From Macrostomum lignano (taxonomy: Eukaryota): a stretch of DNA of 64,000 bases. Positions 3,634 to 53,749 of the stretch are shown in pieces. A program made the position numbers and the translations under genes. The DNA is taken from positions 248,001 through 312,000 of the forward strand of contig NIVC01001182.1 in the NCBI GenBank assembly GCA_002269645.1, read 5' to 3'. Below the pieces are notes generated by a model that worked only from the letters and a program-made list of their open reading frames with translations, did not search any database and was not told the origin of the DNA. Positions within the stretch are counted from its first letter, which is position 1, and each line of letters begins with the position of its first letter.

Positions 3634-6600
3634 TCATGAATTTTGTAGGTTAGCGTAACTGTCGCACTGACAGCTGCTTCGACAGGCGCACTGAAACGCT
3701 TTGGTGCAGGCAAAGCATGAACTCCGACGGCACTCCCGGCAGATTGTCCGGCCGCACCAGGGACAGATGTTTTCGTAAACGTTGCCAGAGATGCTGTGCT
3801 GAACGCAACGCTCGTTAGTTGGCAGCGACATCGACAGGCTGTCGATGCAGACTAGGCAAACCGGTTTCTCGCAAGAGTGACAGTACGGCTGCATCTGCTG
3901 TCTCTGCTGCGATTGGCTAGCTCGGACCAGCGACCTGCGTCCTCCTCCGCCGCCGCCATCGACTTTGCCAATCTCGACCATCTGGTGCAGCAGCATGCGA
4001 CAGTCTGAACAGGCGATAGCCGTGCAGAATGTGCAGAGACTGCGGCGACATCTCGGACAGACGTCTTTACGGCACGTTTGGCACAGTTGGACCTGCAGTA
4101 GATAAATGGCCCTGTTTTTTTGTTTGCTTTTGTTTTAATTGATTGCAAGTGTACGCATAGTACATGATGTGACCTAGTCTATAAACCTAGACCGCTTTCT
4201 GGCTTGTTTGCCTTCGTCAGTGAGCCATAGCCCTCTTCCACGACTTTCGGTGTGCAAGACGTTTATTTTGCAGCGTACAATGTAGTTTTAAAAGTAACAG
4301 GCCCTTCGCCAACGTAGAAGCAAGGACCACTGTACTCGTAGCTATATACAGAGTACATATGTATATGTAAAAATTAATCGTGAAGTTTGAAAACATCACG
4401 TGACTTTTATGGATCACGTGACCGATTGCAATGATAGACACTCCCCAGTCTATCCGGAGGTGAGGTTGCTGCAAATGTACAGCCAAAAAATGCGAGATCG
4501 GCTATGGAGCTTCTATGGATCACGTGACCAATCACAATTATTGACGCCTATTGGAGTGAGGTTTCTGTACATTTTAAGTCATAAAAAAGCGAGATCAGCT
4601 AGGAGCTTTTGCAGATCACGTGACCAACTGCAACCGCAGACTCCCAGTGTAGCGGAGTGGGGTTGCTGCGAATGTACAGCCATAAAAAGCGAGATCAGCT
4701 AGGAGCTTTTACGGATCACGTGACCAACTGCAATCACAGACGTCCAGTGGGACAATCTTACCACTGAATAAAACAGCTCGCCCTTCTTGTCGGTCTTATA
4801 GGTAGTCAGCGGTACCAGCGGACACTCGATGGTACGCCGTAGTGCCACACTTTTCGGCGGATCGTGCACAGGATCCTCTGGAAGCCGATGCGCCGGACGC
4901 CTTTCGACTGCGCCTGGTCTGTAGAGCTCATTAATTGGCGCATTGCCCAACGATTCTAATTCGTCGCTCCAGGCTACACCCTCGGAGGTGATGGTCACCA
5001 GCTTGTTCAGGCTAGAAGCACCAGCGGTTGTGCCGGAATTCTTAGACCTGGCCGACTTCTTGCCTGACTTCTTTACGGGCCGCTTCTTTTTTATAAAGTT
5101 GATACAAAACGATTTAGAAGTAAGTATGAATAATTTTCAGTCATAAATTTATTACGAGTACAATATTTATTTCTATTTTTTTATTGCTTTGCTCCTTTGC
5201 ACCTGTTTTGGGAGCTCCCGACTCTTGCTGATTCTTTTTAAGCCACTCTTAAACTCCTAAGTACCCCTCTGTCTCACCTCTCTAATACCCCTCTATCTCA
5301 CCTCTCCAATACCCCTCTATCTCACCTCTCTAACACCCTCTATCTCACCTCTCTAATACCCCTCTATCTCACCTCTCTAATACCCCTCTATCTCACCTCT
5401 CTAATACCCCTCTATCTCACCTCTCTAACACCCTCTATCTCACCTCTCTAATACCCCTCTATCTCACCTCTCTAATACCCCTCTAACTCACCTCTCTAAT
5501 ACCCCTCTAACTCACCTCTCTAATACCCCTCTAACTCACTCTCTAATACCCCTCTCCCTCACCTCTATTCCCTTGTATTAAAATAGCTCAATTATGATTT
5601 TGTTAGCATTCTGATACTACTAAAAAAATCTTTTAAGCCTTGGTAGGCTCGTGAAAAGACCAACTCGTATCAATAAGTGCATTATAAGTGCCTGCAAAGA
5701 AAAAACAGGACTCAGACTCACTTTCGCTAGTTTCGTATTCCCACCGCCCAACTCGCGACTTTGCCCAGCAACAACCTTTTTGGCAGCTCTGCCTGCAGCG
5801 GGGCCTTTGCCTGCGGCCGCGCTTTTACCAGCAAAACCGTCTGTTTTTGCAACAGTCGCAGTTTTTCCTGCTCCGCTGGTAATGACGCCGCCAGCCCCAC
5901 CGACCACAGTGCCGGCGGCGCCGCGTTTCAAGAAACGGTCCACCCTGACGGCGTCGATAACCGAATTTGTCGCTGCGCTGAAGTTCACCAGCTGGTGATC
6001 ATTGTCAAGGTTCGCGTCCGGTTGCTCGCTGCCGGAAGATCTCAACAGGGCCGTCTTGTCGTTGGTGTCGTCGCTCTGTACGTGACGATGGCGTCTCCGA
6101 CGGGATGTCGCTGATGACTTCGAAGTTCGAGTAGCAGTTGGAGTCGGTGTCCGGGCTGTTGTCGACGATGGTAACGAGACCAGCCGACTGGCTGACACAG
6201 CCGTCAGGGTGGTGGCGCAGGAGCGAGGGCTCCTCCTGCCGCTGCTCCTGGCGGAGCGACGAGTGCCCGACTTAGCGCCTGCGGATGACACTTCAGCTGC
6301 TGCTGCAAGGTGTGACACGACATCATTTGGGACCACCCGGTGAAGCGTTTGTATGAGTGCGTGTCTGCATACAGTCAGAGGAGTGAACAGAATTGCCCCA
6401 GAGCTGCCTCGCAGCTCATTGCCTCAGGAAAAATGACGTCGAATGTGTTAGCGCCAGAGTTCCCACTACTTTCCTACGATAATTTACATTTGTTGATTTA
6501 TAAATACAGACAGCTCCAGAGACAGACAGAAAACAGAGACAGACACCAAGAAAAAACAGACGGAGCAAACCAACCTGGCACCAAGTCAACGGCCTCAATT

Positions 6601-7424: not shown

Positions 7425-8233
7425 CGCCAGCCACCCAGATCATCATCAATTACTGGGACAGCCTCTCAGATCCTCATCAGTTGCTGGGACAGCCTCTCAG
7501 ATCCTCATCAGTTGCTGGGACAGCCTCTCAGATTCTCATCAGTTGCTGGGCCAGCCTCCCAGAGTGTCAGTTGCTGGGCCAGCCTCCCAGAGTGTCAGTT
7601 GCTAGGCCAGCCTCCCAGAGTGTCAGTTGCTGGGCCAGCCTCCCAGATCCTCATCAGTTGCTGGGACAGCCTCCCAGAGTGTCAGTTGCTGGGCAAGCCT
7701 CCCAGAGTGTCAGTTGTTAGGCCAGCCTCCCAGAGTGTCAGTTGCTGGGCAAGCCTCCCAGAGTGTCAGTTGCTGGGCCACCCTCCCAGAGTGTCAGTTG
7801 CTGGGCCAGCCTCCCAGAGTGCCAGTTGCTGGGCCAGCCTCCCAGATCCTCATCAGTTGCTGGGACAGCCTCCCAGAGTGTCAGTTGCTGGGCAAGCCTC
7901 CCAGAGTGTCAGTTGTTAGGCCAGCCTCCCAGAGTGTCAGTTGTTAGGCCAGCCTCCCAGAGTGTCAGTTGCTGGGCCAGCCTCCCAGAGTGTCAGTTGC
8001 TGGGCCAGCCTCCCAGATCCTCATCAGTTGCTGGGACAGCCTCCCAGAGTGTCAGTTGCTGGGCAAGCCTCCCAGAGTGTCAGTTGTTAGGCCAGCCTCC
8101 CAGAGTGTCAGTTGCTGGGCCAGCCTCCCAGAGTGTCAGTTGCTGGGCCAGCCTCCCAGATCCTCATCAGTTGCTGGGCCAGCCTCCCAGATCCTCATCA
8201 GTTGCTGGGCCAGCCTCCCAGAGTGTCAGTTGC
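7425..8233 (+). repeat. 28/31-bp minisatellite, family A (CAGTTGCTGGGCCAGCCTCCCAGA-GTGT/TCCTCAT)
   Basis: Direct periodicity; the same core occurs at 10795, 21103 and 60930. Confidence 0.95.
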
Positions 8234-8608
8234 ATATACATACATACATACAAACTTTTTAGATTTATAGTTATATAGACTACAGAATATCGTCTCGAGT
8301 GAAGAGAAAACCAAATAGTTCGCTCATTTCAAAAGTTTTTAAAGAAGCTTCAAAATTCCATTAAAATCCTGTTGCTTATGGGGAGAATTTCTGAGATGCT
8401 GAGATAGGTCTCAAAATTGGGAGTGGTTTGTAGGACAAACATTAAAGAAGAAAACTTGAGGTTAAGCCATGGCCGGATGCCTTTTTGCATCAAACATCAT
8501 TTTCCTTGGGAAATTTTCAATAGTGACTGTACAAGGCCAAAGTCTGTACATGGTTGCTTAAAAAATCGTTCTCTGTTGCCTTTCCAACGGGGCGGAGATT
8601 TAAAGGTG

Positions 8609-9088
8609 GTCGGGTTTCGGGGTCGGGTTTCGGGGTCGGGTTTCGGGGTCGGGTTTCGGGGTCGGGTTTCGGGGTCGGGTTTCGGGGTCGGGTTTCGGGT
8701 CGGGTTTCGGGGCCGGGTTTCGGGGTCGGGTTTCGGGGTCGGGTTTCGGGGCCGGGTTTCGGGGTCGGGTTTCGGGTCGGGTTTCGGGGTCGGGTTTCGG
8801 GGCCGGGTTTCGGGGTCGGGTTTCGGGTCGGGTTTCGGGCCGGGTTTCGGGGTCGGGTTTCGGGTCGGGTTTCGGGGTCGGGTTTCGGGGCCGGGTTTCG
8901 GGGTCGGGTTTCGGGGTCGGGTTTCGGGGCCGGGTTTCGGGGTCGGGTTTCGGGGTCGGGTTTCGGGGTCGGGTTTCGGGGCCGGGTTTCGGGGTCGGGT
9001 TTCGGGGTCGGGTTTCGGGGTCGGGTTTCGGGTCGGGTTTCGGGGCCGGGTTTCGGGGTCGGGTTTCGGGGTCGGGTTTCGGAACCCC
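8609..9088. repeat. 13-bp G-rich minisatellite (GGGGTCGGGTTTC)n
   Basis: Direct periodicity with 12-bp variants. Explains four overlapping repeat ORFs. Confidence 0.95.
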
Positions 9089-9534
9089 GAAAAAATTGCC
9101 ATCCCAAACACCCCTGCTGGATTTGAGTTAGAGATATTGGGGGTTTTTTTCTTTAGGAGACTTTAGAAGGGAATCATTGTTTTCGATATTTCTAAGTGTT
9201 TTAAAGTTCCAGCCTCCCCACTCCTACGCAGATTGCACTTTTTTCAGTTTCTGTACAGCCAAAGATAAGAATTAATTACTCAAAAGTAATAAGAAAGTAA
9301 AACAGACAGCCCTGAATGTAATCAATAAAGTGAGCTCAGCAGTTAGAAAATTTACTATTCATATTCCTTACAGAGATCGTGATCATAAAATCCTTAATGG
9401 GACTTCCTGCTCAGATTGCAATAATTTTTTATGTTGCTGGATTAAAATCTAGGGAAATAGAAATTTTATTGTAATCTTGACAGGAAGTCGAATTTGAGAA
9501 CTGCTGCTTGTCGATTTTTATGGAATCTTGAGTC

Positions 9535-9542
9535 TATAAATA
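9535..9542 (+). promoter_or_regulatory. TATA box candidate for the secreted peptide gene
   Basis: TATAAATA 88 bp upstream of the ATG at 9623. The region is AT-rich, so chance is possible. Confidence 0.45.
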
Positions 9543-9622
9543 AAAATTTCAGCGGCACGGACACCCAATCAATTCTTATACAATACAAGATTATTGACTC
9601 CAAACAGCTTCAAGAAGCAGGC

Positions 9623-9829
9623 ATGCGAGTTCTGTTTGTTCAGGTTCTGGTTCTCATCGTTTCTATGGTAGCAGTTGAAGCTTTTAATTTCAATCAATAT
9701 AAAAGCCCCCAGTGTCTAAGTGACAACTGCTTTTGTTTCAACGAAATATGCTATGGAGATTCCAGTTGCAACGTAGGGGACACGTGCAGTGCTACGTATA
9801 GTTGGTGGCGGTGGTGGTGGTGGGGGTGA
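9623..9829 (+). CDS. Small secreted cysteine-rich peptide (68-aa precursor, 6 Cys, Trp-rich C-terminus)
   Basis: MRVLFVQVLVLIVSMVAVEA (signal-peptide-like, VEA|F cleavage) followed by FNFNQYKSPQCLSDNCFCFNEICYGDSSCNVGDTCSATYSWWRWWWWG*. Upstream TATA; AATAAA at about 10085. Confidence 0.7.
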   Translation: MRVLFVQVLVLIVSMVAVEAFNFNQYKSPQCLSDNCFCFNEICYGDSSCNVGDTCSATYSWWRWWWWG

Positions 9830-10316
9830 TGAAGCTCAATAAGTTTCTATCGGTGTTCTGCGCTACTGACGCTACTGATGCCGTCGGGACGCTTCTCAGA
9901 CAAACCTGATCATGAAAGATCTATATGCGGAATATGGAAAATATACAGGGAATAATTGAATACATGAGCTCACTTCAGTGACTGCATTAAGCGCTGTTTG
10001 TTTTACTCGGTTCCTTTTTGCAAGTTTCAAATTTGTTGGGAGAAGATTTTTTAGTCTTATTGTTTTGAGTAAAGAGCCTCAAAGAATAAATTGCATATTT
10101 TCTTATCTTTTCGGTTGTAGAGAAACTGAAGACAGAAGAAATGTCAACCTGCGGCCCCTCATTGCGGAGGCAGCAAAAAAAATAAACACTTTGAATGAAC
10201 CACAATAATGTCGGTTTTTGACCTCGCACAGTCACTATTGTTAATTTCTTAAGGAAAATGATGCAAAAAAGCATTCACCTTAAAAGCCAGACAAAGAATT
10301 TTAGAAATTCTCCTCG

Positions 10317-10794: not shown

Positions 10795-12141
10795 GCTGGG
10801 CCAGCCTCCCAGATCCTCAGTTGCTGGGCCAGCCTCCCAGATCCTCAGTTGCTGGGCCAGCCTCCCAGATCCTCAGTTGCTGGGCCAGCCTCCCAGATCC
10901 TCAGTTGCTGGGCCAGCCTCCCAGATCCTCAGTTGCTGGGCCAGCCTCCCAGATCCTCTGCAGTTGCTGGGCCAGCCTCCCAGATCCTCAGTTGCTGGGC
11001 CAGCCTCCCAGATCCTCAGTTGTTGGGCCAGCCTCCCAGATCCTCTGCAGTTGCTGGGCCAGCCTCCCAGATCCTCAGTTGCTGGGCCAGCCTCCCAGAT
11101 CCTCTGCAGTTGCTGGGCCAGCCTCCCAGATCCTCAGTTGCTGGGCCAGCCTCCCAGATCCTCTGCAGTTGCTGGGCCAGCCTCCCAGATCCTCAGTTGC
11201 TAGGCCAGCCTCCCAGATCCTCTGCAGTTGCTGGGCCAGCCTCCCAGATCCTCAATTGCTGGGCCAGCTTCCCAGTTCCTCAGTTACTGGGCCAGCCTCC
11301 CAGATCCTCAGTTGCTGGGCCAGCCTCCCAGATCCTCTGCAGTTGCTGGGCCAGCCTCCCAGATCCTCAGTTGCTGGGCCAGCCTCCCAGATCCTCAGTT
11401 GTTGGGCCAGCCTCCCAGATCCTCAGTTGCTAGGCCAGCCTCCCAGATCCTCTGCAGTTGCTGGGCCAGCCTCCCAGATCCTCAGTTGCTGGGCCAGCCT
11501 CTCAGATCCTCTGCAGTTGCTGGGCCAGCCTCCCAGATCCTCAGTTGCTGGGCCAGCCTCCCAGATCCTCAGTTGTTGGGCCAGCCTCCCAGATCCTCTG
11601 TTGCTGGGCCAGCCTCCCAGATCCTCAGTTGCTGGGCCAGCTTCCCAGATCCTCAGTTGCTGGGCCAGCCTCCCAGATCCTCAGTTGTTGGGCCAGCCTC
11701 CCAGATCCTCAGTTGCTGGGCCAGCCTCCCAGATCCTCAGTTGCTGGGCCAGCCTCCCAGATCCTCAGTTGTTGGGCCAGCCTCCCAGATCCTCAGTTGC
11801 TGGGCCAGCCTCCCAGATCCTCTGCAGTTGCTGGGCCAGCCTCCCAGATCCTCTGCAGTTGCTGGGCCAGCCTCCCAGATCCTCAGTTGCTGGGCCAGCC
11901 TCCCAGATCCTCTGCAGTTGCTGGGCCAGCCTCCCAGATCCTCAGTTGCTGGGCCAGCCTCCCAGATCCTTAGTTGCTGGGCCAGCCTCCCAGATCCTCA
12001 GTTGTTGGGCCAGCCTCCCAGATCCTCAGTTGCTGGGCCAGCCTCCCAGATCTTCAGTTGCAGGGCCAGCCTCCCAGATCCTCAGTTGCTGGGCCAGCTT
12101 CCCAGATCCTCAGTTGCTGGGCCAGCTTCCCAGTTCCTCAG
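10795..12141 (+). repeat. 28/31-bp minisatellite, family A (CAGTTGCTGGGCCAGCCTCCCAGATCCT +/- CTG)
   Basis: About 46 units. Explains ORFs 10750-12202. Confidence 0.97.
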
Positions 12142-12857
12142 TATTCAACTATTTCAAGTAGATAAACGGGAAACTATTAATTACGTTTCTTGGGAAATTT
12201 AGGAGGCTGATTTTACCGAGTAAAGTGCATTGCGAAGATGGAGGTTTTCATTTTTCGGCACAAGAATTGCTATTGGCTTTTAATCGGACACAAATGCAGT
12301 ATAGAGCTTTTCGCTTAGAAAATAAGATTCGACTAGCAATCTAGTGCCCCCATTCGGGCTGCGCAGTAAGCAAGGAGCTAAATTTATTGGTGCAACTGCA
12401 TTATAAAGCACATTTTCTTACGAACGAATTTCTTTTTCAGTTTTATAAATCACCTTATTTTCATCTCTTGCACACAGTGTTACATATAGTCAGCTATTTT
12501 AATGATAAAGTAGATTTATAAAACCACGCAATGACTAGCTAGAGACGTTGATTTTTATAGTATTTAGGCACAGGACGACATGTAAGATTGTACGTAGAAG
12601 AAAAAATGACATTGAACCCTAATTTTCTAACTGAAGAGCTTTATAAAGATCAATAGAGCTATACTGTAGGAAAGGCACAACATATCAAAAGATGAGCACT
12701 GGGTCTGCCTCCTACCAAAGCAATAAGAGTATTTGTTCTAAAAAATGAATACCTATATCCGTAAGGTATTTTTTCTTGTTTATTACACCGATCAATGGCA
12801 AAAATCAATTGATGCAGACAAAACATTTCTAGTAAATAGTTCATCCGCAATATATGC

Positions 12858-13142: not shown

Positions 13143-13713
13143 ATGTCATCGCTACGTAGTGCGTCATGCTCTGTAGCAAACAAGCGGGTGAGCCATTTTG
13201 TACTGCATGCTTTGCTTTTGCCATAGAAGTTACTGTAGGAGTCGGAGTGTAGCTCATTGTAGCTCGTAATTCTGTATCTGTAAGTGTTAACGTTAACGAT
13301 TCCCGATCCTGCTGGAACAAGTTGTGTCCTTATTGAGCAAGACACTTAACTCTGCATTGCTTCAGTTCACCCAGCTTTGAAATGGGTGCCAGCATTAGCT
13401 GGGGGATAATTGAGGGTGTGTAGCGACCCCCCTAAGTCCTTGGACTAAACAGCCGTACGCAGTCTTCAGATGCGCCGCGCAATAACTGCGGCTGAGCTGT
13501 CGGTTGCACATCTGCATGGCCCCAATCGGGGCACGTATAACCAATAATATTGATTAATTATATTAACGTAAAATTATCCGTTTGTTTGGTCGTTAAGAAA
13601 ATTCCAGGTTTTGTTACCCACGGCCACGTACTGTCGTTGTTATAGGTCTGTAGCGGAAGACTAATAGAACAAAACGAAAGCTACAAGCTATTTGCTTGTA
13701 AACTTTTGTACTA

Positions 13714-13791
<78 letters not shown>

Positions 13792-13792
13792 T

Positions 13793-13845
<53 letters not shown>

Positions 13846-13846
13846 T

Positions 13847-13899
<53 letters not shown>

Positions 13900-13972
13900 T
13901 TACTACTACTACTACTACTAATACTACTACTACTACTAATACTACTACTACTGCTACTACTACTACTACTGT

Positions 13973-14007
<35 letters not shown>

Positions 14008-14008
14008 T

Positions 14009-14043
<35 letters not shown>

Positions 14044-17000
14044 TTACTACTACTACTACTACTACTACTATTACTACTACTACTACTACTACTACCTTTT
14101 CTCCCACAGCAGCACAAGTCCTCTGACGGCCCGACCCCGGCGAAACAGGTCAAGAGCCCTGGTGCCACTGAGACTGTGTCGCCAGACGCTGCTGCAGACG
14201 CCTCCAAGCCGTTCACTCCAGCGCTCAGTCAGCAGTATCGCGAGCGAATCCGGCCAGTGCTGAACAGCATCGATCGTCTCCGGTCGCACGGCCTACAAAA
14301 TGAGCTCCGCCTGCCCACAGTAGCCGTTGTGGGCGACCAATCGGTAGGCAAATCCAGCGTGCTGGAGGCCATCTCGGGCGTGGACTTGCCGCGGGGTAGC
14401 GGCATTGTGACTCGCTGCCCGCTGCAGCTGAGCATGCGCTCAAAGCCAACTGGAGACTGGACTGGCAGGATTAGGTGAGCATCTTTATAGTTCAGATATC
14501 AATTCACGTCCTTTGAACTCCTGTTTGACTTATTACAGTGTATGCTCACACAGGGTGTGTACAGCGGCCCTGACTTTCGTTCTAATCGTCAGGCTTTGGG
14601 GGGGGGCTGGCCTACGACACCCCCTGGGCCAATATTTGTGCGCACAAGTCCCAAATGAATGTGGTCGTAACATTGAATCGAACCAGGGGTCGTGGCTTTT
14701 TAGTAGATGCGTTTACATTCAACTTCGTTTCAGCCTGGAGCGCAGCGCTTCATTGATATTGTCAAAAATGAAATTGTTTCAAAATTGAAATTGATGAAAT
14801 TGTCTGCTCTTCTCTCCTCTCCCTGTTCTCTCCTCTGTCTCCCCTGTTCTCTCCTCTCTCCCCTCTTCTCTCCTCTCCCTGTTCTCTCCTCTGTCCCCCT
14901 GTTCTCTCCTCTCCCCTCTTCTCTCTCTCCTCTTCTCTCCTCTCTCTCCTCTTCTCTCCTCTCTCCCCTCTTCTCTCTCTCCTCTTCTCTCCTCTCTCTC
15001 CTCTTCTCTCCTCTCTCCCCTCTTCTCCTCTCTCCCCTCTTTTCTCCTCTCTCCCCTCTTTTCTCCTCTCTCCCCCTGTTCTCTCCTCTCCCCCTGTTCT
15101 CTCCCCTCTCCCCCTGTTCTCTCCTCTCTCCCCCTGTTCTCTCCTCTCTCCCCCTGTTCTCTCCCCTCTCCCCTGTTCTCTCCTCTCCCCCTGTTCTCTC
15201 CCCTCTCCCCTGTTCTCTCCTCTCTCCCCCTGTTCTCTCCTCTCTCCCCTGTTCTCTCCTCTCCCCCTGTTCTCTCCCCTCTCCCCCTGTTAGCTCTCTC
15301 CCCCTGTTCTCTCCCCTCTCCCCCTGTTCTCTCCTCTCTCCCCCTGTTCTCTCCTCTCTCCCCCTGTTCTCTCCCCTCTCCCCCTGTTCTCTCCTCTCTC
15401 CCCTGTTCTCTCCCCTCTCCCCCTGTTCTCTCCTCTCCCCTGTTCTCTCCCCTCTCCCCTGTTCTCTCCTCTCTCCCCCTGTTCTCTCCTCTCTCCCCCT
15501 GTTCTCTCCTCTCTCCCCCTGTTCTCTCCTCTCTCCCCCTGTTCTCTCCTCTCTTCCCCTGTTCTCTCCTCTCCCCTCTCCGGTCTTTTCTCTCCTCGCC
15601 CAAAGCCAGCCTGCAAAAGTTCTTCATGTGCTGTGTTCCAAGCTGCAACGTTACAAGTAGCTCGTAGTGCAAGATTCACTGACAAGACACCCTTCAAACC
15701 CCTGACAACAGCTACCAAAATCGCCAGGGCGAGCAGATCGAGCGCAGCATATCGAAAACATGTGAAGTAGACGAAATAGTGCGCAAAGTACAAAACGAAA
15801 TCACTGGCGACTCGAACGGCGTATCTACGGAGCAGATCGACCTGACCATTGAGAGCGCGGATGTGTCCGACCTCACCCTGGTTGACCTGCCCGGCATTGC
15901 CAGGTACTCTGAGAAGAATCCAAAGATCAACGAGGTCACCAAGCAGCTGATTCTGTCTTACATCAGCCAGGAGCAGGTGATCATCCTGGTTGTTGTACCC
16001 TGTAGCGTGGACATCGAGACAGTGGAGGCCATTGCTCTAGCCAAACAGGTGGACCCAGGGGGCACCAGGACGATCGGAGTCCTGACTTGCCCGGACCTGA
16101 CCAACCCTGGCAGCGAGGAGGACATCAAAGCCATCGTCAACAACCAAGGCAGAGTGCGACTGCACAAAGGCTTTGTCATGGTGAAATGCCGCAGTCCCAA
16201 GGAGCTCAGGAACAACATCAGTCTGAGCGAGGTGGCCAAAATCGAGGAGGATTATTTCAAAAACGATCCGCACTTCAGCCAGCTGCCAAAGGATATCGTT
16301 GGCACAAAGACGCTGGCAGAGAAGCTGACAAACGAATTGTTCAAGGCTGTGGCTGCTGGCATTGAGACTCTGGAGGAGAGTCTGAAGGTAAGTCAATTTC
16401 GGATGAAGCAAAACTCCGGCCCGCGAGGCCTCTCTATCCAGCCCCCGGGTCCTTTGAAACTTCAGAGTTACAATCTGGGGATCTGTTTGTGCTTGTGTCT
16501 TCTCAGCTCTCCCCTCTCCTCTCTCCCCTCTTCTTTTGTGTCTCCCTCTCCTCTCCTCTCTCCCCTCTCCTCTCCTCTCTCCCCTCTTCTCTCCTTTCTC
16601 CCCTCTTCTCTCCTTTCTCCCCTCTTCTCTCCTTTCTCCCCTCTTCTCTCCTTTCTCCCCTCTTCTCTCCTTTCTCCCCTCTTCTCTCCTTTCTCCCCTC
16701 TTCTCTCCTTTCTCCCTTCTTTTGTGTCTCCCCTCTTCTCTCCTCTCTCCCCTCTTCTCTCCTTTCTCCCTTCTTCTTTTGTGTCTCCCCTCTTCTCTCC
16801 TCTCTCCCCTCTTCTCTCCTTTCTCCCCTCTTCTCTCCTCTCTCCCCTCTTCTCTCCTTTCTCCCCTCTTCTCTCCTTTCTCCCTTCTTCTTTTGTGTCT
16901 CCCCTCTTCTCTCCTCTCTCCCCTCTTCTCTCCTCTCTCCCCTCTTCTCTCCTTTCTCCCCTCTTCTCTCCTCTCTCCCCTCTTCTCTCCTTTCTCCCCT

Positions 17001-19794
17001 CTTCTCTCCTTTCTCCCCTCTTCTCTCCTTTCTCCCTTCTTCTTTTGTGTCTCCCCTCTTCTCTCCTCTCTCCCCTCTTCTCTCCTCTCTCCCCTCTTCT
17101 CTCCTTTCTCTCTTCTCTCTCCCCTCTTCTCTCCTTTCTCCCCTCTTCTCTCCTTTCTCCCTTCTTCTTTTGTGTCTCCCCTCTTCTCTCCTCTCTCCCT
17201 CTTCTCTCCTTTCTCCCTCTTCTCTCCTCTCTCCCCTCTTCTCTCCTTTCTCCCCTCTTCTCTCCTTTCTCCCTTCTTCTTTTGTGTCTCCCCTCTTCTC
17301 TCCTCTCTCCCCTCTTCTCTCCTCTCTCCCCTCTTCTCTCCTTTCTCCCCTCTTCTCTCCTCTCTCCCCTCTTCTCTCCTTTCTCCCCTCTTCTCTCCTT
17401 TCTCCCCTCTTCTCTCCTTTCTCCCTTCTTCTTTTGTGTCTCCCTCTTCTCTCCTCTCTCCCCTCTTCTCTCCTCTCTCCCTCTTCTCTCCTTTCTCCCC
17501 TCTTCTCTCCTCTCTCCCCTCTTCTCTCCTTTCTCCCCTCTTCTCTCCTTTCTCCCTTCTTCTTTTGTGTCTCCCCTCTTCTCTCCTCTCTCCCCTCTTC
17601 TCTCCTCTCTCCCCTCTTCTCTCCTCTCTCCCCTCTTCTCTCCTTTCTCCCCTCTTCTCTCCTTTCTCCCCTCTTCTCTCCTTTCTCCCTTCTTCTTTTG
17701 TGTCTCCCCTCTTCTCTCCTCTCTCCCCTCTTCTCTCCTCTCTCCCCTCTTCTCTCCTTTCTCCCCTCTTCTCTCCTCTCTCCCCTCTTCTCTCCTTTCT
17801 CCCCTCTTCTCTCCTTTCTCCCTTCTTCTTTTGTGTCTCCCCTCTTCTCTCCTCTCTCCCCTCTTCTCTCCTCTCTCCCCTCTTCTCTCCTTTCTCCCTT
17901 CTTCTTTTGTGTCTCCCCTCTTCTCTCCTCTCTCCCCTCTTCTCTCCTCTCTCCCCTCTTCTCTCCTCTCTCCCCTCTTCTCTCCTTTCTCCCCTCTTCT
18001 CTCCTTTCTCCCTTCTTCTTTTGTGTCTCCCCTCTTCTCTCCTCTCTCCCCTCTTCTCTCCTTTCTCCCCCCTTCTCTCCTCTCTCCCCTGTTCTCTCCT
18101 CTCTCCTCTCCTCCCTTCCCTTTTCTCTCCTCACCTAAAGCCAGTCTGCAAAAGTAAATTTAACATTTTTAATTTTCACGCAGAGCAAGCTGAAGGACTA
18201 CGAAGAGGAGCTGAAAGACCTGGAGGACAGTCTGTGCGAGACAGACAGCGACAAGAGAGCCTACCTGATGCGCAAGCTGCAGCAGTTTGCCTCAAAAGTA
18301 CACGCCGCCACGGCCAGTTCAGAGGACGCATTCGCGACGGGCAGCTCCAGCAGTCTGTACAGCAGCTGTCTGACTAAATGTTCCAGCTTTGGCTACTCTG
18401 TGAGCAGGAGCCAGCCTGGTGAGTTGTTTTTTCATTACGAGTACCATGGCTCATGTACTCGGCGCTATCCACTGACGTCCATGGCAAACTGCCCATTTCA
18501 GACTGGATCGTTGACAACTCGAAAGGCGTACCCGACTATGTCTCCGGCGAGGTGCAGCTAAGAAGAGGACGCGAGCTTCCAACTTTCACATTTGTGTACC
18601 CTATTGTTCAGAAGATTGTATTCGAAAAGTATTTGCCAAAGATAGAAAAGCTGGCGAAGTGGCTACTCGGTGAGGTGCAGTCTCAAGTTACTAAAACGCT
18701 AGAGAAACTGGCCGATGACTGTTTCAAAGCGTTTCCAAGGCTGCTGCTACTTTTGAAAGAAACTGTTGTCAAGGCGATCGAAGCCCAAGAGGCGGAGTGC
18801 CGGGCCGACCTGGCTAAGCTGATTTCACACGAGCGCCGCTTGTTCACTCAGGACAGCCAGTTTTCGGAAAAACTGCGAGTTGTTACAATGCAAAAACAGT
18901 CTCCACATTTTGTTTTTCAGTGAGTGATTGCTTTGATTGGGCGTTTAAGGAAGGGTATGGGTGCTGGCGCCCCTTGGTGCTGGCGCCCGTTTGGTGCTGG
19001 CGCCCCTTGGTGCTGGCGCCCCTTGGTGCTGGCGCCCGTTTGGTGCTGGCGCCCCTTGGTGCTGGCGCCCCTTGGTGCTGGCGCCCCTTGGTGCTGGCGC
19101 CCCTTGGTGCTAAAGCCCCTTGGTGCTAAAGCCCCTTGGTGCTGGCGCCCCTTGGTGCTAAAGCCCCTTGGTTCTAAAGCCCCTTGGTGCTGGCGCCCCT
19201 TGGTGCTAAAGCCCCTTGGTGCTGGCGCCCCTTGGTGCTAAAGCCCCTTGGTTCTAAAGCCCCTTGGTGCTGGCGCCCCTTGGTGCTAAAGCCCCTTGGT
19301 GCTGGCGCCCCTTGGTGCTAAATTCAATCCATACTAGTACAAATAAGCCTCACTATGATGTTAATAATACTTTTAAACTTCCATAATGTTAATAATACTT
19401 TTAAACTTCCATAATGTTAATTAACCGTGACGGTCCTTGACCAATTCATTCCAGGGGACCAACAGCACTAGCCGCCTCAAGCGAGCCGTCACATGAGGAG
19501 CGAATTCGCCTGGGAACCAGAGCCTACCTGATGCTGGCCTCTCAGCGCATCGCGGACACGGTGCCAATGTCTGTGCTGTGCCACATGCTCGACAGCGTTG
19601 CCACCAAGCTGGTTGCCGACATGACCCGACTGTTTGCCGGCGGCAGCGACCAGGTGGACATCCTGGATCTGCTGCGAGAGAAGGAGGGCAGGCAGCGGAG
19701 AAGACGCTACCTGACTCAGGCCGCTTGTCAGATGCGCGAGTCGCGGAAGGAGCTGCAGAGCGCCAAGCAGAACCGCATGCTGCTGGAGGACTGA
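13143..19794 (+). CDS. Mx: Mx-like (myxovirus resistance) dynamin-superfamily GTPase, 6 exons, 692 aa
   Basis: Exons 13143-13187, 14110-14474, 15712-16387, 18184-18418, 18502-18919 and 19455-19794 give 2079 nt; all are GT-AG and phase-consistent. Motifs: Mx-type N-terminal helix ([19 protein letters not shown]), G1 [22 protein letters not shown] (G2), DLPG (G3), stalk RGRELP, and GED ([15 protein letters not shown]). There is no PH or proline-rich domain. Exon 1 is the least certain. Confidence 0.93.
13244..13545 (+). mobile_element. tRNA-derived SINE with CORE(MIR)-like central domain, near full length, in Mx intron 1
   Basis: A-box-like GTAGCTCATTG (13249) and degenerate B-box (ACGATTCCC). 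The segment GAGCAAGACACTTAACTCT...CAGTTCACCCAGCT..AAATGGG resembles the CORE consensus. Two further partial copies are in the window. Confidence 0.7.
13709..14095. repeat. (ACT)n microsatellite, about 390 bp, ending at the Mx exon 2 polypyrimidine tract
   Basis: Direct; explains the poly-T/V/S/Y ORFs. Confidence 0.98.
14805..15590. repeat. CT-rich low-complexity tandem array, Mx intron 2
   Basis: Units such as CCCCTGTTCTCTCCTCTCT. Confidence 0.95.
16495..18132. repeat. CT-rich tandem array with interspersed TTTTGTGTC units, Mx intron 3
   Basis: Units of about 19 bp (CCCCTCTTCTCTCCTTTCT). Explains ORFs 16489-18377. Confidence 0.95.
18959..19320. repeat. 16-bp minisatellite (TGGTGCTGGCGCCCCT / TGGTGCTAAAGCCCCT), Mx intron 5
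   Basis: Direct periodicity. Confidence 0.95.
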
Positions 19795-21102
19795 GACAAG
19801 CGATTCTGCTTGAGATGAAACATGGAAGGTGGTTTATGCGGCTTTAACCTAAACTAATGATAAAAGTTTGAATGGATCGCTACACTATACCATCGCACTG
19901 ACTCCTGGCTGAACTACTTTTCGAAATAACCCTGACGACCTTAACTATACATAGCTACTCGCTGCAGTACTTCTCTGCTCGGTATCCATCTATAACCAGT
20001 TGTTTTAAACAGTTGAATTCAATCTCGCTACAAATCTCTTTATAAGTATTTAATCGTCTAAAAGCATGATAAAAAACATCTTTGTGTTTGATTAAAATTC
20101 GTACTTTAACACTTTGTTTTCTACTCTTTTCTACCTACATTAGTCGCTTATAAGGCCAATAAAATCCTTTTAATTGCTAAAACAAAAATGGTTTCTGCTT
20201 ATTAATAAATACACAATTAAAGTTGCTAAAGTTGGGCAAATTCTGCTCAAATTAAATTACTCGTAAATAAATAAAAGGCGTGATTATTACAGTCACTTGT
20301 TACCTTGAAGTACTCGTAAAACAGGACGTAACACTTAAAGATCATATGGAAATTGTTTGGAGACCAATTTCCTGGGAAATGCACTGCGGAGATAATAAAA
20401 ATCCTATTTAATCAAAACAAAATTGAAATGATTTCATTTTATCTGGGGCAGTGAATATTACCATTATTTTAATTTACCATTGTTGCCCCGCTGTATTGTA
20501 GAAAAAATGCGCTTCGAAATGAAACTACGCCTACCATAGTGGCGCTCAAGAGCAGTACCTGAATGCAACATTTTATTGACAAATATGAATCATTAAAAAT
20601 GAACGAATCAATCAATCAAATGCAATCATCATTTATTTTGTGATTAAAATGATTTTTTTAATATCTCCACAGAGTACTTTTTCCAGAAAGTCGGCCTCCA
20701 AAAAAATTACACGATGTTTGAGTTTTACATGTAGGTCCAGTTTTACTAAAGTGGTACTTATTTACTTCAAGCTACGAACTTCAGCCTGAAGCAAGCATTA
20801 CTCTCATGGAAATTCTACGGTTTTTCCATGGATTTTCCGAAACAAAGTTTCCCTTACTGCGCACTACTGTTTACTCTAGCTGGTATATCAAAAGCAATCA
20901 TGATGGCAATGCATTTTTTCGGAATTTTATTGACCCCTAAAAATTGAACACTAGGAAAACAATTGAAAACGGGTCGCTTAAACTAAGATAAAACAGCAAT
21001 TGGTATATTTAAAGATTTTACAGATCCTAATGATAAAAGCACTGTTTTTTCTTGGATTTGACAACAGTCTTGAAAAACCGCTTTGGTCAGCAGCCTAAAG
21101 TC

Positions 21103-21380
21103 CCCAGTTGCTGGGCCAGCCTCTCAGATCCACACTTGCTGGGCCAGCCTCCCAGATCCTCATCAGTCACTGGGCCAGCCTCCCAGAGTGTCAGTTGCTG
21201 GGCCAGCCTCCCAGAGTTTCAGTTGCTGGGCCAGCCTCCCATGAGCGTCAGTTGCTGGGCCAGCCTCCCAGATCCACATCAGTGGCTGGGCCAGCCTCCC
21301 AGATCCTCATCAGTCGCTGGGCCAGCCTCCCAGATCCTCATCAGTCGCTGGGCCAGCCTCCCAGATCCTCAGTTGCTGGG
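21103..21380 (+). repeat. Minisatellite family A, diverged copy
   Basis: Same GCTGGGCCAGCCTCCCAGA core. Confidence 0.9.
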
Positions 21381-24877: not shown

Positions 24878-27800
24878 TCAATGCGAGCCGTGCATCTGCA
24901 AGTCCAGCTTAATCTGGACCTCGCCAGTGTCAACCTCGGACAATCGCAATCGTTTTGTGATTGGCCCGTGCTTCGCTTTAGCCAAGTCTTTGGCCACATC
25001 GGCAATGCGCAGTTCGGCTCGGCCTAGGAAAGTGTTCGGCGAAAAGAAATCACGATCGTACACAGTGATGGATAGGACGTCCTCGTTGGGGTCGGCAATG
25101 TGAAATTGCATTGCTTTGTTCCACACCGGATTTAGCGTAGCTCTAATCACTTCGGTGCACTGGCGTTGCGAGCCTAGTGAAACTTCTGCGTACGGGTCGC
25201 TTTTGTTGTCACCGCCCAGATTGCCAACCTTCAATGAGTAGCCCTGCTCTACTGTTAGTAGTAGCCGACCGACGCTCTCCCGGCTGAAGGCCCGGCTGCG
25301 TTGGTTGTTTTCTGCGTAGTTTTTATTGGGGAAAGGGTGGGTTCTACTCGTAGCACAATAAAAACTGAATAAGTTTAGGCGTGTTTGCTGTGGTTGGAAG
25401 ATAAGGAAGATAACTGTAGAGGGAGTAGAGGCTTGTGCGAGAGGCTCTCTGTGTAACAATTGGCGCTGAGTTGTCTAGGGGGAGTGGGGTGGGGGTTTTA
25501 TGAGGGGAGGCCCTGCGTACATCTGGGGGCAGTAATTGACTAGGGGGAGTGGGGCGGGGGTTTATGAAGGGAGGGAGGCCCTGCGTTACATCTGGGGGCA
25601 GTAATTGAATAGGGGAAATTGGGCGGGGGGTTATGTGGAGAGGTCCTGCGTACATCTGGGGGTAGTAATTGTCTAGGGGGAGTGGGGTGGGAGTTTATGA
25701 CGGGAGGCCTTGCGTACATCTGGGGGCAGGAATTGTCTAGGGAGGAGTGGAGTGGGTTTTTGAGGGAAGGCCCTGCGTATATTTGAGGGTAGGTGTTGTT
25801 TGTTTAGGAGTAGGGTAGGCTTTGTCTAGGGCGAGTGGGTGGGGCTCTATGATGGGAGGCCCTGTGTACAAGTGGAAAGTTTTGTTTAAAAAACTCTTGA
25901 GTTGGCCTATAAAGTCAAACAGCTCAAGTAATATTGTTAAAATTTAAGACACCCACTGGTTCATTAGGAATACAAGCATTATTGAGTTCATGGTTATACG
26001 CCAACAAAAGAAATAAACAATATTATTAAATAAAAATTAATTATAATAACTTTGCTTGGCTGATGCAAGCGTCCGTTGCTCCTATTATTAAGCTAAATAT
26101 CGACTTTTATACGAGTTACTACAATTACGAATATTTTTATCAACGATACCGTATAAGTTGTTTTCTGAACAATCTGATTAAAACTTTGAAGCACATGCAA
26201 TCAGATTTAATCAGAATAGCTATACATTTAAGAAATAATTCAAGGTTTAATAGTTGAAGAAAACCATCACCCTAATAGTAATTTTATAATCGGTTTTTTA
26301 TATGAATAAAATTTATTAAAATACCAGAATTTATAATAAAAATCTTCTGTTTTAATATCATCCTCAAGCCTAATGAATGGACTTTTCGTTAGTGTAATTG
26401 TAGCCAATCAACTATACTGACTAGGGGGAGGGGGCAGGCTACGACGCTGCAAGCCAATAGGAATGAGGAGAAGGGTAGAATGATGGAGGCGGGACAGAGA
26501 GATAAAAACCCCAGCCAATCAGCGAACGCAAAGTTTTTTACTATAGCGAAAGAGGCTACAGTGCAGCGACGCAGCGGACGACGTTACAATAATGAATTAA
26601 GCCAACTGCAAAACTACTGCCAATAATAAGTAGTGCGTTTACCGCGCTACGGTTTATATAAATAACCATTTTTCATCAGAGGCAGGGGCTGTGTGCACCT
26701 GGCGCACTTCAAATGAACATTGTCACACAACCGCCCGCCCATTACTGCCCATTCCACCGACTCTCCTGAGCAGTCATAAGCACAGGCACACACTCACACA
26801 GGAGTGTACAGCGGCCCTAGGCATGTACACTTCACTGTGCCTTGGGGTTGGCCCTCAAGGCCGTTAATTGCACGAGCAGAGCCAAGCCGAGATTCCAATT
26901 TAGCCTCAAATTAATGTGACTGCACTTGGAATCGAGCCTGGGCTGCTGGCAAATCAGAGCGCCTGCTGGATTATTGGGCTACGGCCCCCTCTAAAACCAT
27001 AGTTTGGTTTAATATCTGTAGTGTTCATTAATTTAAATCTTTAGTAGAACCGCACTGGATTAATGGAACTAATTAATAAATTAAAACTATGCCAGCCAAA
27101 AAAGTTTATCGTTGAAAGCGAGAGATTAAAATTGGTTAAAGACGATAATATAAAATTTAGTGCCAATTAGTCACACTATGCCGACGCCTATGTTATCAAG
27201 GGCAATTAATAGAAAACGTAATAACTGGTTATTTAAGACACAATGAATATAGTGGAGACTATGAAGTTGCCCAGTCTCAATAATTCAATCATTATCGAAA
27301 TTTATAATAAACTGCGTCTTTTATTACCTTCGATAGCCAATTTCTCTAAAAATATGAAATGAAATACAAACCATTTTTGTTGGTACTTTTAAAGCAGTAA
27401 ATAAGTTGAATTGAACAGAAATAGCTACTTGATGACTATTCACTGTCGACAATATTGGTTTGGGTTAGGGTAAGGTTAGGGGTAGGTGTGTAGGGTTAGG
27501 TAGGGTTGGGATTGGGTATGGTTAGAGTAGGGTTAGGGTAGGTTTGGGTAAGGTAGGGTTAAGATAGGGCTGGGTAGGTTTGGCGAGGGTTGGGTAAGGT
27601 TTGGGTTGGGGTAGGGTTTGAGTAGGGTTAGGTACGTGGTTTGGGGTAAGGTAGGGTTAGGGTAGGGTTGGGTAGGATTGGGTAGGGTTGGGGTAGGGTT
27701 GGGGTAGGGTTAGGGTAGGTTTGGGGTAAGGTAGGGTTAGGGTAGGGTTGGGTAGGTTTGGGTAGGGTTGGGTAAGGTTTGGGTTGGGTTGGGGTAGGGT

Positions 27801-30800
27801 TATGATAGAACAGTCAATTTTCGAATGTAGATTCAAAAGAACAATGGAATTGAAAAAAGACACTGTTAACGATTTTACTATACATTAGCGTCCTTAAAGA
27901 GTCAAAACAAAAATTAGAATTTGATTAACACTTTATTTACTGATATTAGCAGCAAATTTTAGGCGGTTATATAAAGGCAAAAAGCTATATTGCACACATG
28001 TGATTACTTTGAGATTAAAAGTACATCGTACACTTTTAAACAAAATAACAAGAGCCATTGTCTTTGACAATTATCATTATTATACTATAGTTTCAAAGTT
28101 TAAATTTGCTGCTAAGAACTTTAAGTAAAGTGTTAATAATGATATTGCAATGAGCATCTCATTAAAATTATCAGCTGATAGCAACTTACTCGATGCAGGC
28201 GCCTTCTAGCCATGCGTTCTACATGTAGACAGGTTGAACAAACAACAGTATAGAAGCTTGTCGCTATTTAATAATAACACTAATATGATTATAATACTAC
28301 TATTATACTACTAATAGACAGAAAATATTGATTTAGGAATCTATAACGACACCACGTAAAAATAAGTAAAACAAACAAATGCTATAACCACACCGTAGTG
28401 CGCATTGCATAGCTGTTGTGGTGCAATTAAAAATTAAAGCAGAGAATGCACGAACAGCATAAAGTGGGCTAATTATTAGGGATATATTTTATCGATTTTT
28501 TTGATAAATCACTTATGGGAGCTATTGATTAAAATCCCATTTGGGGAAGAATGGGATCACAAGCAGTCATATGGGAGCTACTGATTGAAATCCCATTTGG
28601 AGAAGAATGGAATCACAAGCAGTCAGATGGGAGCTACTGATTGAAATCCCATTTGGAGAAGAATGGGATCACAAGCAGTCAGATGGGAGCTACTGATTGA
28701 AATCCCATTTGGAGAAGAATGGAATCACAAGCAGTCAGATGGGAGCTACTGATTGAAATCCCATTTGGAGAAGAATGTGATCACAAGCAGTCATATTGGA
28801 GCTACTGATTGAAATCCCATTCGGGGAAGAATGGGATCACAAGCAGTCATATGGGAGCTACTGATTGAAATCCCATTCGGGGAAGAATGGGATCACAAGT
28901 AGTCATATGGGAGCTACTGATTGAAATCCCATTCGGGGAAGAATGGGATCACAAGTAGTCATATGGGAGCTACTGATTGAAATCCCATTTGGGGAAGAAT
29001 GGGATCACAAAAATTAATATGGGAGCTACTGATCAAAATCCCATTTGGTGAAGAATGGAATCACAAGCAGTCATATGAGAGCTACTGATTAAAATCCCAT
29101 TTGGGGAAGAATGGGATCACAAAAATTAATATGGGAGCTACTGATCAAAATCCCATTTGGTGAAGAATGGAATCACAAGAATTCATATGGGGGCTACTGA
29201 TTGAAATCCCATTTGGGGAAGAATGGGATTATAATTCATATGGGAGCTACTTGAAATCCTATTTGGAGAAGAATGGGATCACAAGTAGTCATATGGGAGC
29301 TACTGATTAAAATCCCATTTGGGGAAGAATGGGATCACAAGCAGTCATATGGGAGCTACTGATTGAAATCCTATTTGGAGAAGAATGGGATCACAAGCAG
29401 TCATATGGGAGCTACTGATTAAAATCCCATTTGGAGAAGAATGGGATCACAAGCAGTCATATGGGAGCTACTGATTGAAATCCTATTTGGAGAAGAATGG
29501 GATCACAAGCAGTCATATGGGAGCTACTGATTAAAATCCCATTTGGAGAAGAATGGGATCACAAGTAGTCATATGGGAGCTACTTGAAATCCTATTTGGA
29601 GAAGAATGGGATCACAAGTAGTCATATGGGAGCTACTGATTAAAATCCCATTTGGGGAAGAATGGGATCACAAGCAGTCATATGGGAGCTACTGATTGAA
29701 ATCCTATTTGGAGAAGAATGGGATCACAAGCAGTCATATGGGAGCTACTGATTAAAATCCCATTTGGAGAAGAATGGGATCACAAGCAGTCATATGGGAG
29801 CTACTGATTGAAATCCTATTTGGAGAAGAATGGGATCACAAGCAGTCATATGGGAGCTACTGATTAAAATCCCATTTGGAGAAGAATGGGATCACAAGTA
29901 GTCATATGGGAGCTACTTGAAATCCTATTTGGAGAAGAATGGGATCACAAGTAGTCATATGGGAGCTACTGATTAAAATCCCATTTGGGGAAGAATGGGA
30001 TCACAAGCAGTCATATGGGAGCTACTGATTGAAATCCTATTTGGAGAAGAATGGGATCACAAGCAGTCAGATGGGAGCTACTGATTGAAATCCCATTTGG
30101 AGAAGAATGGGATCACAAGCAGTCAGATGGGAGCTACTGATCAAAATCCTATTTGGAGAAGAATGGGATCACAAGCAGTCAGATGGGAGCTACTGATTGA
30201 AATCCTATTTGGAGAAGAATGGGATCACAAGCAGTCATATGGGAGCTACTGATTAAAATCCCATTTGGAGAAGAATGGGATCACAAGCAGTCATATGGGA
30301 GCTACTGATTGAAATCCTATTTGGAGAAGAATGGGATCACAAGCAGTCATATGGGAGCTACTGATTGAAATCCCATTTGGGGAAGAATGGGATCACAAGC
30401 AGTCATATGGGAGCTACTGATTGAAATCCCATTTGGAGAAGAATGGGATCACAAGCAGTCAGATGGGAGCTACTGATTGAAATCCTATTTGGAGAAGAAT
30501 GGGATCACAAGCAGTCAGATGGGAGCTACTGATCAAAATCCTATTTGGGGAAGAATGGGATCACAAGCAGTCAGATGGGAGCTACTGATCAAAATCCCAT
30601 TTGGGGAAGAATGGGATCACAAGCAGTCAGATGGGAGCACTAGGATTTGTGCTAAGAAACTCAAAGACTGTGTTGAGAAAATGTAGAAGATTTTGTCATA
30701 AATTTACAGATTTATAGATAAATTTCACGGATTCTGATAGGACAAAAGCGTGTCAGAAAGTCTAACAAAGATGCAGACAGGAAAAGACAAAAGCATCAAA

Positions 30801-52903: not shown

Positions 52904-53749
52904 GACCGGATTGTTTCTATTCAATTTAATATGGCTTCCGAAATGTTAGCTGAAATCAATGATGGATGTTCACAAATAATAATTGATGGATTTGAACTTA
53001 ACGAATTCTAAGAAACTCTGCTCGATGTTAAAAACTGTTTAACTGTGGGGTTGCATGCAAGTTTACTTAATAATTAAGATAAACATTGACGAACAACGCG
53101 GCTTATCATAAATGATTATAAATAAATACATTCTATTGGATTGTGCAGACATCACAATATTGGTTTAGAAGGGACAGCCATTCTGTGCACATAGGCAAAG
53201 GGCAGGCAATATGCTAAAAACATAAATAAAACAGACAAGTGTTGTTGGCTCTCGAGGCGAAAATAGTTTAGCATAAAGTACAGATGGGTCAAATAGTTTT
53301 AAAATAAAACTTCTCCACCAAAGTACATATTGCATTTTTACTTGCATAAAAGAAAGATTCTCTTAATGGAGGAACAATTTTTGGTCAGCAATGATTATAA
53401 TCATACAAAATTAGGTTTACAAGATTTTAGGTTTAAAAGATTTCATTGATTTCTGCGTATACCTCAAAGACGAAAGAAGAAAACGGTAATACATAAAATA
53501 AAGAGCAAATGAAGACTAAGTTTAATGCATAAAACTTGCAACTAAACTCTAAAAAATCAACAATCAGTGTCAGAAACTGACAACACAAAGACAGAGTAAA
53601 AAATTCAACGTTAGAAATTAGAAAAGAAGTTAAACAAAATAAAATAGTCAAACAAGTATTTATGGATATGTCTATCGGTGCGCAAACTTTTACTGTCATT
53701 TGGAAACAAGCAATAAATTTAAGGATGTGAATGGGTTTTAAGTTAGGGC

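Follow-up and report, generated by a model that had tools for sequence, protein, structure and literature searches.

The question raised by this locus is whether a short open reading frame (ORF) with the look of a secreted peptide is a gene or an accident of the repeat-rich DNA around it. In the window, by which we mean the whole 64-kb stretch of DNA that was analysed, 68 codons followed by TGA can be read on the forward strand from the ATG at 9623 to the TGA ending at 9829, and their translation is MRVLFVQVLVLIVSMVAVEA (leader) joined to FNFNQYKSPQCLSDNCFCFNEICYGDSSCNVGDTCSATYSWWRWWWWG (mature part) and a stop. A preliminary description of this ORF had given its position, a leader of 20 aa, a C-x4-C-x-C-x4-C-x5-C-x5-C spacing and a SWWRWWWWG-stop end, and all of these were recovered in our reading and translation of the sequence. 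The leader has an Arg at position 2, a hydrophobic core of 16 residues and V-E-A at positions -3 to -1; its best 14-residue Kyte-Doolittle mean is 2.96, and the ORF is the sole non-repeat ORF in the window to pass a rule-based signal-peptide filter. The leader is GTT-rich (six codons), and the idea that it is itself a tandem repeat was rejected, as TRF calls none there at a score of at least 30. The computed pI is 4.05 for the core, and the mature 48-aa peptide has a computed charge of -2.3 and a pI of 4.2. The features of the ORF and of its surroundings are collected in Table 1.

Table 1. Positions in the window of the ORF parts, flanking motifs, inverted repeats and neighbouring genes.
Feature	Positions	Strand	Basis or remark
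TATA-like box TATAAATA	9535-9542	+	Consensus match only; 81-88 nt upstream of the ATG
Inr-like motif cccAatc (A at 9567)	9565-9571	+	Direct read; degenerate, putative motif
Signal-peptide-like leader MRVLFVQVLVLIVSMVAVEA	9623-9682	+	Translation; 20 aa
Acidic core, 40 aa, six Cys in 25 residues	9683-9802	+	Translation
Trp tail WWRWWWWG	9803-9826	+	TRF and frame analysis
AATAAA	10085-10090	+	Consensus match only; 256 nt past the stop
Inverted repeat, left arm, decayed	8495-9370	.	Split by a 13-bp minisatellite (8608-9082)
Inverted repeat, right arm	9933-10263	.	Alignment to the left arm
Very stable 94-nt hairpin	9398-9491	+	Folding; shortly before the TATA box and 130 nt before the ATG
RMD1-3-like gene	1228-1890	-
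Mx-like gene, P-loop exon	14200-14475	+
Mx-like gene, G-domain exon	15683-16450	+
Mx-like gene, Dynamin_M exon	18423-18920	+
Mx-like gene, GED exon	19441-19791	+
Intersectin-like gene (EH, coiled-coil, SH3, DH-PH and C2 parts)	24881-48990	-	Exon translations read
Na/K-ATPase beta-like gene	50651-52945	-	Exon translations read
FAM135/DUF676-like gene	56355-59324	-	FAM135 exon also searched

The reading that we put first by a small margin, with a probability of roughly 0.45, is that of a lineage-restricted, young, single-exon gene or proto-gene for a secreted peptide in a Macrostomum-like flatworm, with the tail as read. If so, a transcript of ~540 nt would start at a TATA/Inr promoter near 9567 and end at a poly(A) site shortly past 10090, the leader would bring the product into the secretory pathway, and cleavage after VEA would release a peptide of 48 aa and 5.8 kDa in which three disulfides would hold the acidic 40-aa core. 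The last eight residues, WWRWWWWG, would have come from a (TGG)n microsatellite that happened to be in frame. The Trp run would have a strong tendency to partition into membrane interfaces, or into other surfaces that are hydrophobic or bind aromatic residues, so that the tail, instead of forming pores in the classical cationic manner, would tether the knotted core or make it aggregate, and the terminal Gly may be converted to an amide.

The combination of leader and Cys cluster argues for a gene, for it is rare under null models. In 100 Mb generated by a Markov-3 null fitted to the non-repeat sequence of the window, 147,518 ATG-initiated ORFs of 50-150 aa were found on the two strands, and only three of them had both a leader with a 14-residue hydrophobicity of at least 2.5 (2.96 in the real ORF) and six Cys in at most 26 residues (25 in the real ORF), which amounts to ~0.002 per 64-kb window; a looser filter raised this to ~0.03 per window. 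The marginal rates of the null agree with those in 110 kb of real DNA, where signal-peptide-like leaders were found in 1.7% of the ORFs (2.0% in the null) and at least six Cys in 1.9% (2.7% in the null). When strand-specific nulls were trained on the flanking DNA or on the ORF-containing island, so as to reproduce the local composition, no comparable ORF appeared in 40 Mb of either. The G/T-rich composition of the local strand was therefore rejected as the sole explanation. An ORF of this kind is thus unusual for a single window and not impossible in a genome-wide scan.

The flanking motifs add to this. The TATA box that had been noted upstream is present and correctly spaced, lying at about -32 relative to the A of the Inr-like motif, and the predicted 5' UTR of ~56 nt would contain no upstream ATG; translation would begin at the first ATG that follows the TATA box, which stands in a usable context with G (a purine) at -3. 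Past the stop, the AATAAA is followed by CA and a T/GT-rich stretch, which gives the predicted length of the mRNA. Among the 42 other ATG-ORFs in the window, TATAAA at -150 to -40 was found for three and AATAAA for 12, and none had both. When the ORF features (~0.002 per window) are combined with the two motifs (~0.02), less than one such case per genome is expected by chance, although the contribution of TATA and AATAAA has to be discounted because the windows for the promoter and poly(A) searches were picked after the data had been seen.

The predicted structure points in the same direction. With the mature sequence alone, AlphaFold2 returned a mean pLDDT of 73 and a pTM of 0.44, with residues 11-30 at a pLDDT of 81-84 and modelled as one beta-hairpin, whereas the single control, a six-Cys stretch also of 48 aa that was translated from non-coding DNA of the window, gave 44.6 and 0.20. 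Resting on one control, this contrast may favour a gene by perhaps 3 to 1.

The strongest rival explanation, which we place not far short of an even chance, is that the ORF is a chance product of repeat-rich intergenic DNA and that either no mRNA is made from it or no translation follows. A T/G-rich stretch and a microsatellite that happens to be in frame would then have produced leader, Cys cluster and Trp tail by coincidence, and the TATA and AATAAA motifs would be ordinary AT-rich hexamers. The strongest negative for a gene is the non-coding appearance of its synonymous codon use and its GC3. Over the 60-codon core, the synonymous log-likelihood amounts to -8.2 bits, compared with +14.1 +/- 9.4 for windows of supported exons and -7.5 +/- 12.6 for non-coding open stretches, so that codon usage is unlike that of known exons and only 2% of the exon windows score as low (2nd percentile). 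GC3 is 0.42, compared with 0.62 in exons and a GC of 0.38 in the non-coding background; by hand count the mature part reaches 0.475, the six GTT codons of the leader causing much of the deficit. By our estimate, codon use counts against an established gene by roughly 5-12 to 1; for a young gene its weight is smaller.

The absence of relatives also fits an ORF that arose by chance. The preliminary description had failed to recognise a family, and its impression of an orphan holds: there was no homologue in a word-indexed search of 5.8 billion protein clusters and no genuine one in an exhaustive HMMER search of 1.84 billion protein representatives. Three phmmer matches to long repetitive proteins (E 1e-10 to 5e-4; a bacterial HYR-like repeat, a PKD-like repeat and a translated tandem repeat) were rejected as artefacts of repeat summation, the single repeat units scoring 10-14 bits (E 7e3-1e5) with the Cys unaligned. 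Pfam gave no match at E up to 10 except a leader-driven one to Pilin_N below the cutoff, a PDB sequence search with the peptide and a look-up of the exact product found nothing, Foldseek against PDB with the predicted structure gave nothing below E = 7, and a scan of metagenome contigs yielded no relative. It had also been proposed to look for paralogues that conserve the Trp tail, and tblastn of the 64-kb window found no paralogue of the peptide.

We also compared two M. lignano loci with Mx-like genes (L001 and L002), the locus of the closest protein (P0124) being left out, and no homologue of the peptide was found in either. One cluster of tblastn matches, at L001 10326-10697, was rejected as chance, since it is non-collinear and in different frames with stops; it falls inside a short intron and an exon of the Mx-like gene. 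The two loci are paralogous and not orthologous to the Mx-like locus of the window, because their neighbouring genes (XRN and Lactamase_B in L001, GRAM/RabGAP in L002) differ from those in the window. No frame-keeping orthologue or paralogue was thus found in the databases, in the window or in these two loci. TransDecoder has a default minimum of 100 aa. Coding potential in the M. lignano annotation was estimated with this program (PMC5730564). Given that minimum, a 68-aa product is likely to have been missed by the annotation. Moreover, a lack of relatives and non-coding-like codon use would also be expected of a very young gene.

Chance is further favoured by the setting of the ORF, in which decayed inverted repeats enclose it, a palindromic hairpin lies beside it and minisatellites flank it, within a window of which ~38% consists of minisatellite and microsatellite arrays, and by the derivation of both its tail and its stop codon from a repeat. 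Furthermore, the nulls predict ~10-30 ORFs with such a leader and Cys cluster per genome of 0.5-1 Gb when promoter motifs are ignored, and therefore a genome-wide scan would meet some; our guess for real single-exon genes of this type is a handful to a few tens per genome. Against chance stand the rarity of these features together with TATA and AATAAA, the structural confidence that the non-coding control did not approach, and the position of the start codon as the first ATG after the TATA box.

The codons of the tail are TGG TGG CGG TGG TGG TGG TGG GGG, followed by TGA, TRF reports (TGG)8.7 at 9803-9828, and the codons for its Arg, its Gly and the stop are each one substitution away from the TGG unit; the tail is a decayed (TGG)n microsatellite, and its region holds the only run of at least four GGT/TGG units in the window. 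Six of the seven residues in WWRWWWW are Trp, and the tail has one Arg. It had been cautioned that the +1 frame reads as a poly-Gly tail and that a 1-nt assembly error could have created the Trp tail. The Gly run does exist (VGGGGGGGGDEAQ and a stop), with eight Gly instead of the seven described, and one spurious base in 9786-9805 would suffice; there is, however, no homopolymer longer than 2 nt in this stretch. Since the Gly tail requires a spurious base in 20 nt without homopolymers, the frameshift caveat is largely removed. The only homopolymer nearby is the G5 at 9822-9826, and an indel there retains the Trp tail: according to the frame analysis, the product would end in WWWWGDEAQ and a stop or gain an extension of 27 aa.

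It is nevertheless conceivable, if improbable, that the gene is real and its C-terminus different. An extra base in the assembly before the repeat would mean that the true tail is Gly8-DEAQ, or a splice donor in or near the repeat, such as G/GTGATG at ~9826, would join this exon to a downstream one. By the frame analysis, removal of any single base within 9786-9805 opens the Gly frame and gives an end of GGGGGGGGDEAQ and a stop, and GTGATG follows directly after the last codon. The CGG and GGG interruptions both fall on the T of TGG, and both are synonymous in the Gly frame (GGC, GGG) and non-synonymous in the Trp frame (W>R, W>G), a pattern with a probability of ~0.11 by chance. Poly-Gly is common in proteins, while poly-Trp is, to our knowledge, almost without precedent. 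The synonymy of the interruptions is given little weight because the antisense Pro frame shows it just as well. Besides the lack of any run longer than 2 nt where the error must fall and the retention of the Trp tail after an indel in G5, a different C-terminus is opposed by a stop in the Gly frame 12 codons upstream of the repeat, and for the splicing route a downstream exon was not identified.

Between the arms of the inverted repeat is a spacer of 562 bp (9371-9932) that contains both the ORF and its TATA box, and blocks of the left arm are collinear, over ~400 bp and at 66-85% identity, with the reverse complement of the right arm. The hairpin in the same spacer has a folding energy of -45.1 kcal/mol (z = -7.6) and could be a MITE-like palindrome or the precursor of a small RNA; in Rfam no family reached the threshold, the only matches to the hairpin being sub-threshold and miRNA-like. 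That the whole is a decayed foldback or MITE-like element or a source of hairpin RNA, with a non-coding transcript and an incidental ORF, is very improbable: the collinear arms and the stability of the hairpin speak for it, as does the recurrence at 92% of the palindromic element at 31482-31653 in an M. lignano locus, which indicates that palindromic elements exist in these genomes, but the arms have decayed too far to form long dsRNA or to have been mobile recently, neither spacer nor arm was found a second time in the window or the two M. lignano loci, no Rfam family was matched at threshold, and the features of the ORF are left unexplained.

If the peptide is made as our preferred reading has it, the question of what it does follows. 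The preliminary description had compared it with indolicidin and tritrpticin and suggested an antimicrobial function, a comparison that does not survive the charge calculation: with an anionic mature peptide, the case for such a function is weak. Like those peptides, it has a very high fraction of Trp, and its WWRWWWW is, on sequence, a Trp-dense segment that may insert at the membrane interface as they do. However, indolicidin and tritrpticin have ~13 residues and no disulfides, are strongly cationic and derive from cathelicidins, while this peptide has 48 aa, six Cys and a negative charge, and neither the net positive charge nor the several Arg or Lys among the Trp of cationic Trp-rich antimicrobial peptides is found in it. 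Indolicidin is amidated at its C-terminus. For the present peptide, amidation via the Gly before the stop is only a possibility, and the codon of that Gly (GGG) is a mutated repeat unit.

No other residue prefers the membrane interface as strongly as Trp does. Should the peptide be produced, the most likely mechanism would be anchoring or self-association through the Trp run, with the disulfide core as the presented or stabilising part. The nearest functional analogy may be the Trp-rich domain of wheat puroindoline-a, whose motif is WRWWKWWK and which is held responsible for binding to membranes and lipids (PMC8283790). Puroindoline-a is likewise secreted and disulfide-rich and has a compact Trp cluster with interspersed basic residues. 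In contrast, it is a basic plant protein with ten Cys and five disulfides whose Trp cluster is an internal loop, whereas the flatworm peptide would have an acidic core, only six Cys and a single Arg in a tail at its C-terminus; neither the sequence searches nor Pfam linked it to puroindoline or Tryp_alpha_amyl-type proteins, and the ten-Cys scaffold is absent.

The general plan, a signal peptide and a three-disulfide domain of 30-50 aa that is often restricted to one lineage, is shared with small six-Cys secreted peptides of invertebrates, among them knottins (inhibitor cystine knots), CS-alpha/beta defensins and toxins with a generic C-C-C-C-C-C framework. The Cys spacing differs from that of the first two: knottins have C-C-CC-C-C, and the peptide has no adjacent CC; CS-alpha/beta defensins have a pair of motifs, CxxxC and CxC, and the peptide has no CxxxC and a single CxC (CFC at Cys 2-3). 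No match was obtained in Pfam, among PDB sequences or with Foldseek.

A secretion product of glands (seminal fluid, adhesive or epidermal) would be at least as plausible as an antimicrobial role, because orphan secreted proteins are typical of the prostate and other glands of Macrostomum. For instance, 38 of 65 prostate-limited proteins of M. lignano have signal peptides and 31 of 76 prostate-limited transcripts had no BLAST hit (PMC5977470), and reproduction-related genes evolve fast in Macrostomum (PMC7336406). The prostate-limited Mlig-pro transcripts resemble the ORF in coming probably from the same genus, in encoding signal peptides, in often lacking BLAST hits and in evolving fast (PMC5977470, PMC7336406). 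They differ from it in that they were defined by in situ hybridisation, while the present case is known from the ORF alone, and no sequence relation between them was found.

A more specific form of the preferred reading is that a flatworm-specific secreted mini-protein was born de novo and that a (TGG)n microsatellite captured in frame gave its acidic three-disulfide core a hexa-Trp, possibly amidated anchor at the C-terminus. We regard this as doubtful. De novo ORFs and proto-genes resemble the present ORF in having no homologues, non-coding-like codons, a short length and a segment derived from a simple repeat. Candidates of this type are usually predicted to be disordered. The ORF is set apart from them by its textbook leader, its tight, even-numbered Cys cluster and its moderately confident predicted structure. 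If the specific form is true, the tail would be among the densest natural Trp runs known, and a simple repeat would have created a module for binding to membranes or surfaces. In any event, if the peptide is made, it would combine a disulfide-stabilised secreted domain with a Trp-rich interfacial anchor, a combination not seen before, in which the anchor follows an acidic core as its C-terminal end. It would also be a case of a microsatellite providing a young gene with a functional protein module, which bears on the origin of new secreted proteins in fast-evolving gland repertoires. If no peptide is made, the locus may serve as a calibration case, in which a leader, an even number of Cys, a TATA box, a poly(A) signal and a decent AlphaFold confidence occur together in an ORF that is still unproven.

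The ORF is intergenic. One of its neighbours is a gene on the minus strand (5.6-7.2 kb; probable start near 7214), and the other is the Mx-like gene (14.1-19.8 kb, plus strand). The latter encodes an Mx/dynamin-like GTPase (14100-19800); its first coding exon is at ~14.2 kb, ~4.4 kb downstream of the ORF, and Dynamin_M and GED domains were detected in it. The best relatives of its exons are M. lignano proteins, at 70, 60, 56 and 54% identity, followed by vertebrate Mx at up to 48%. Large CT-rich minisatellites lie between its coding exons (14807-15573 and 16514-18110). Immediately 5' of the first coding exon, a (TAC)129 microsatellite (13709-14095) is open in all three plus-strand frames, as poly-Tyr, poly-Thr and poly-Leu, and its poly-Leu frame continues without a stop into the P-loop exon. 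On the minus strand, a CxxC-rich open frame of 166 codons with a Gly6 run (3637-4134) had no Pfam match; its sequence suggests a zinc-binding or B-box-like domain, and it is possibly an exon of an unannotated gene. The identities of the intersectin-like and Na/K-ATPase beta-like genes were assigned by reading of translations, the exons of FAM135 and RMD1-3 being excepted, and the search with the FAM135 exon gave nothing above 63% identity.

More than half of the M. lignano genome is reported to be repetitive, with 15% simple or tandem repeats, and trans-splicing is widespread (PMC5730564). Some of the repeats in the window have copies of 88-92% identity in the two M. lignano loci. Among them is the palindromic MITE-like element of 172 bp, found at 31482-31653 and at L001 3470-3641, the two being 92% identical when aligned in one orientation and 84% in the opposite one. 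These shared repeats and the relatives of the Mx-like exons indicate that the window is animal DNA, probably of a macrostomid flatworm. Minisatellites fill many introns of the neighbouring genes. A family with a unit of 28-31 bp (GCTGGGCCAGCCTCCCAGATCCTCAGTT) occurs at 7446-8233, 10795-12142, 21105-21371 and, inverted, at 60914-61446, and a degenerate telomere-like array of GGGTTA and GGGTA units is located at 27462-27802, within the region of the intersectin-like gene.
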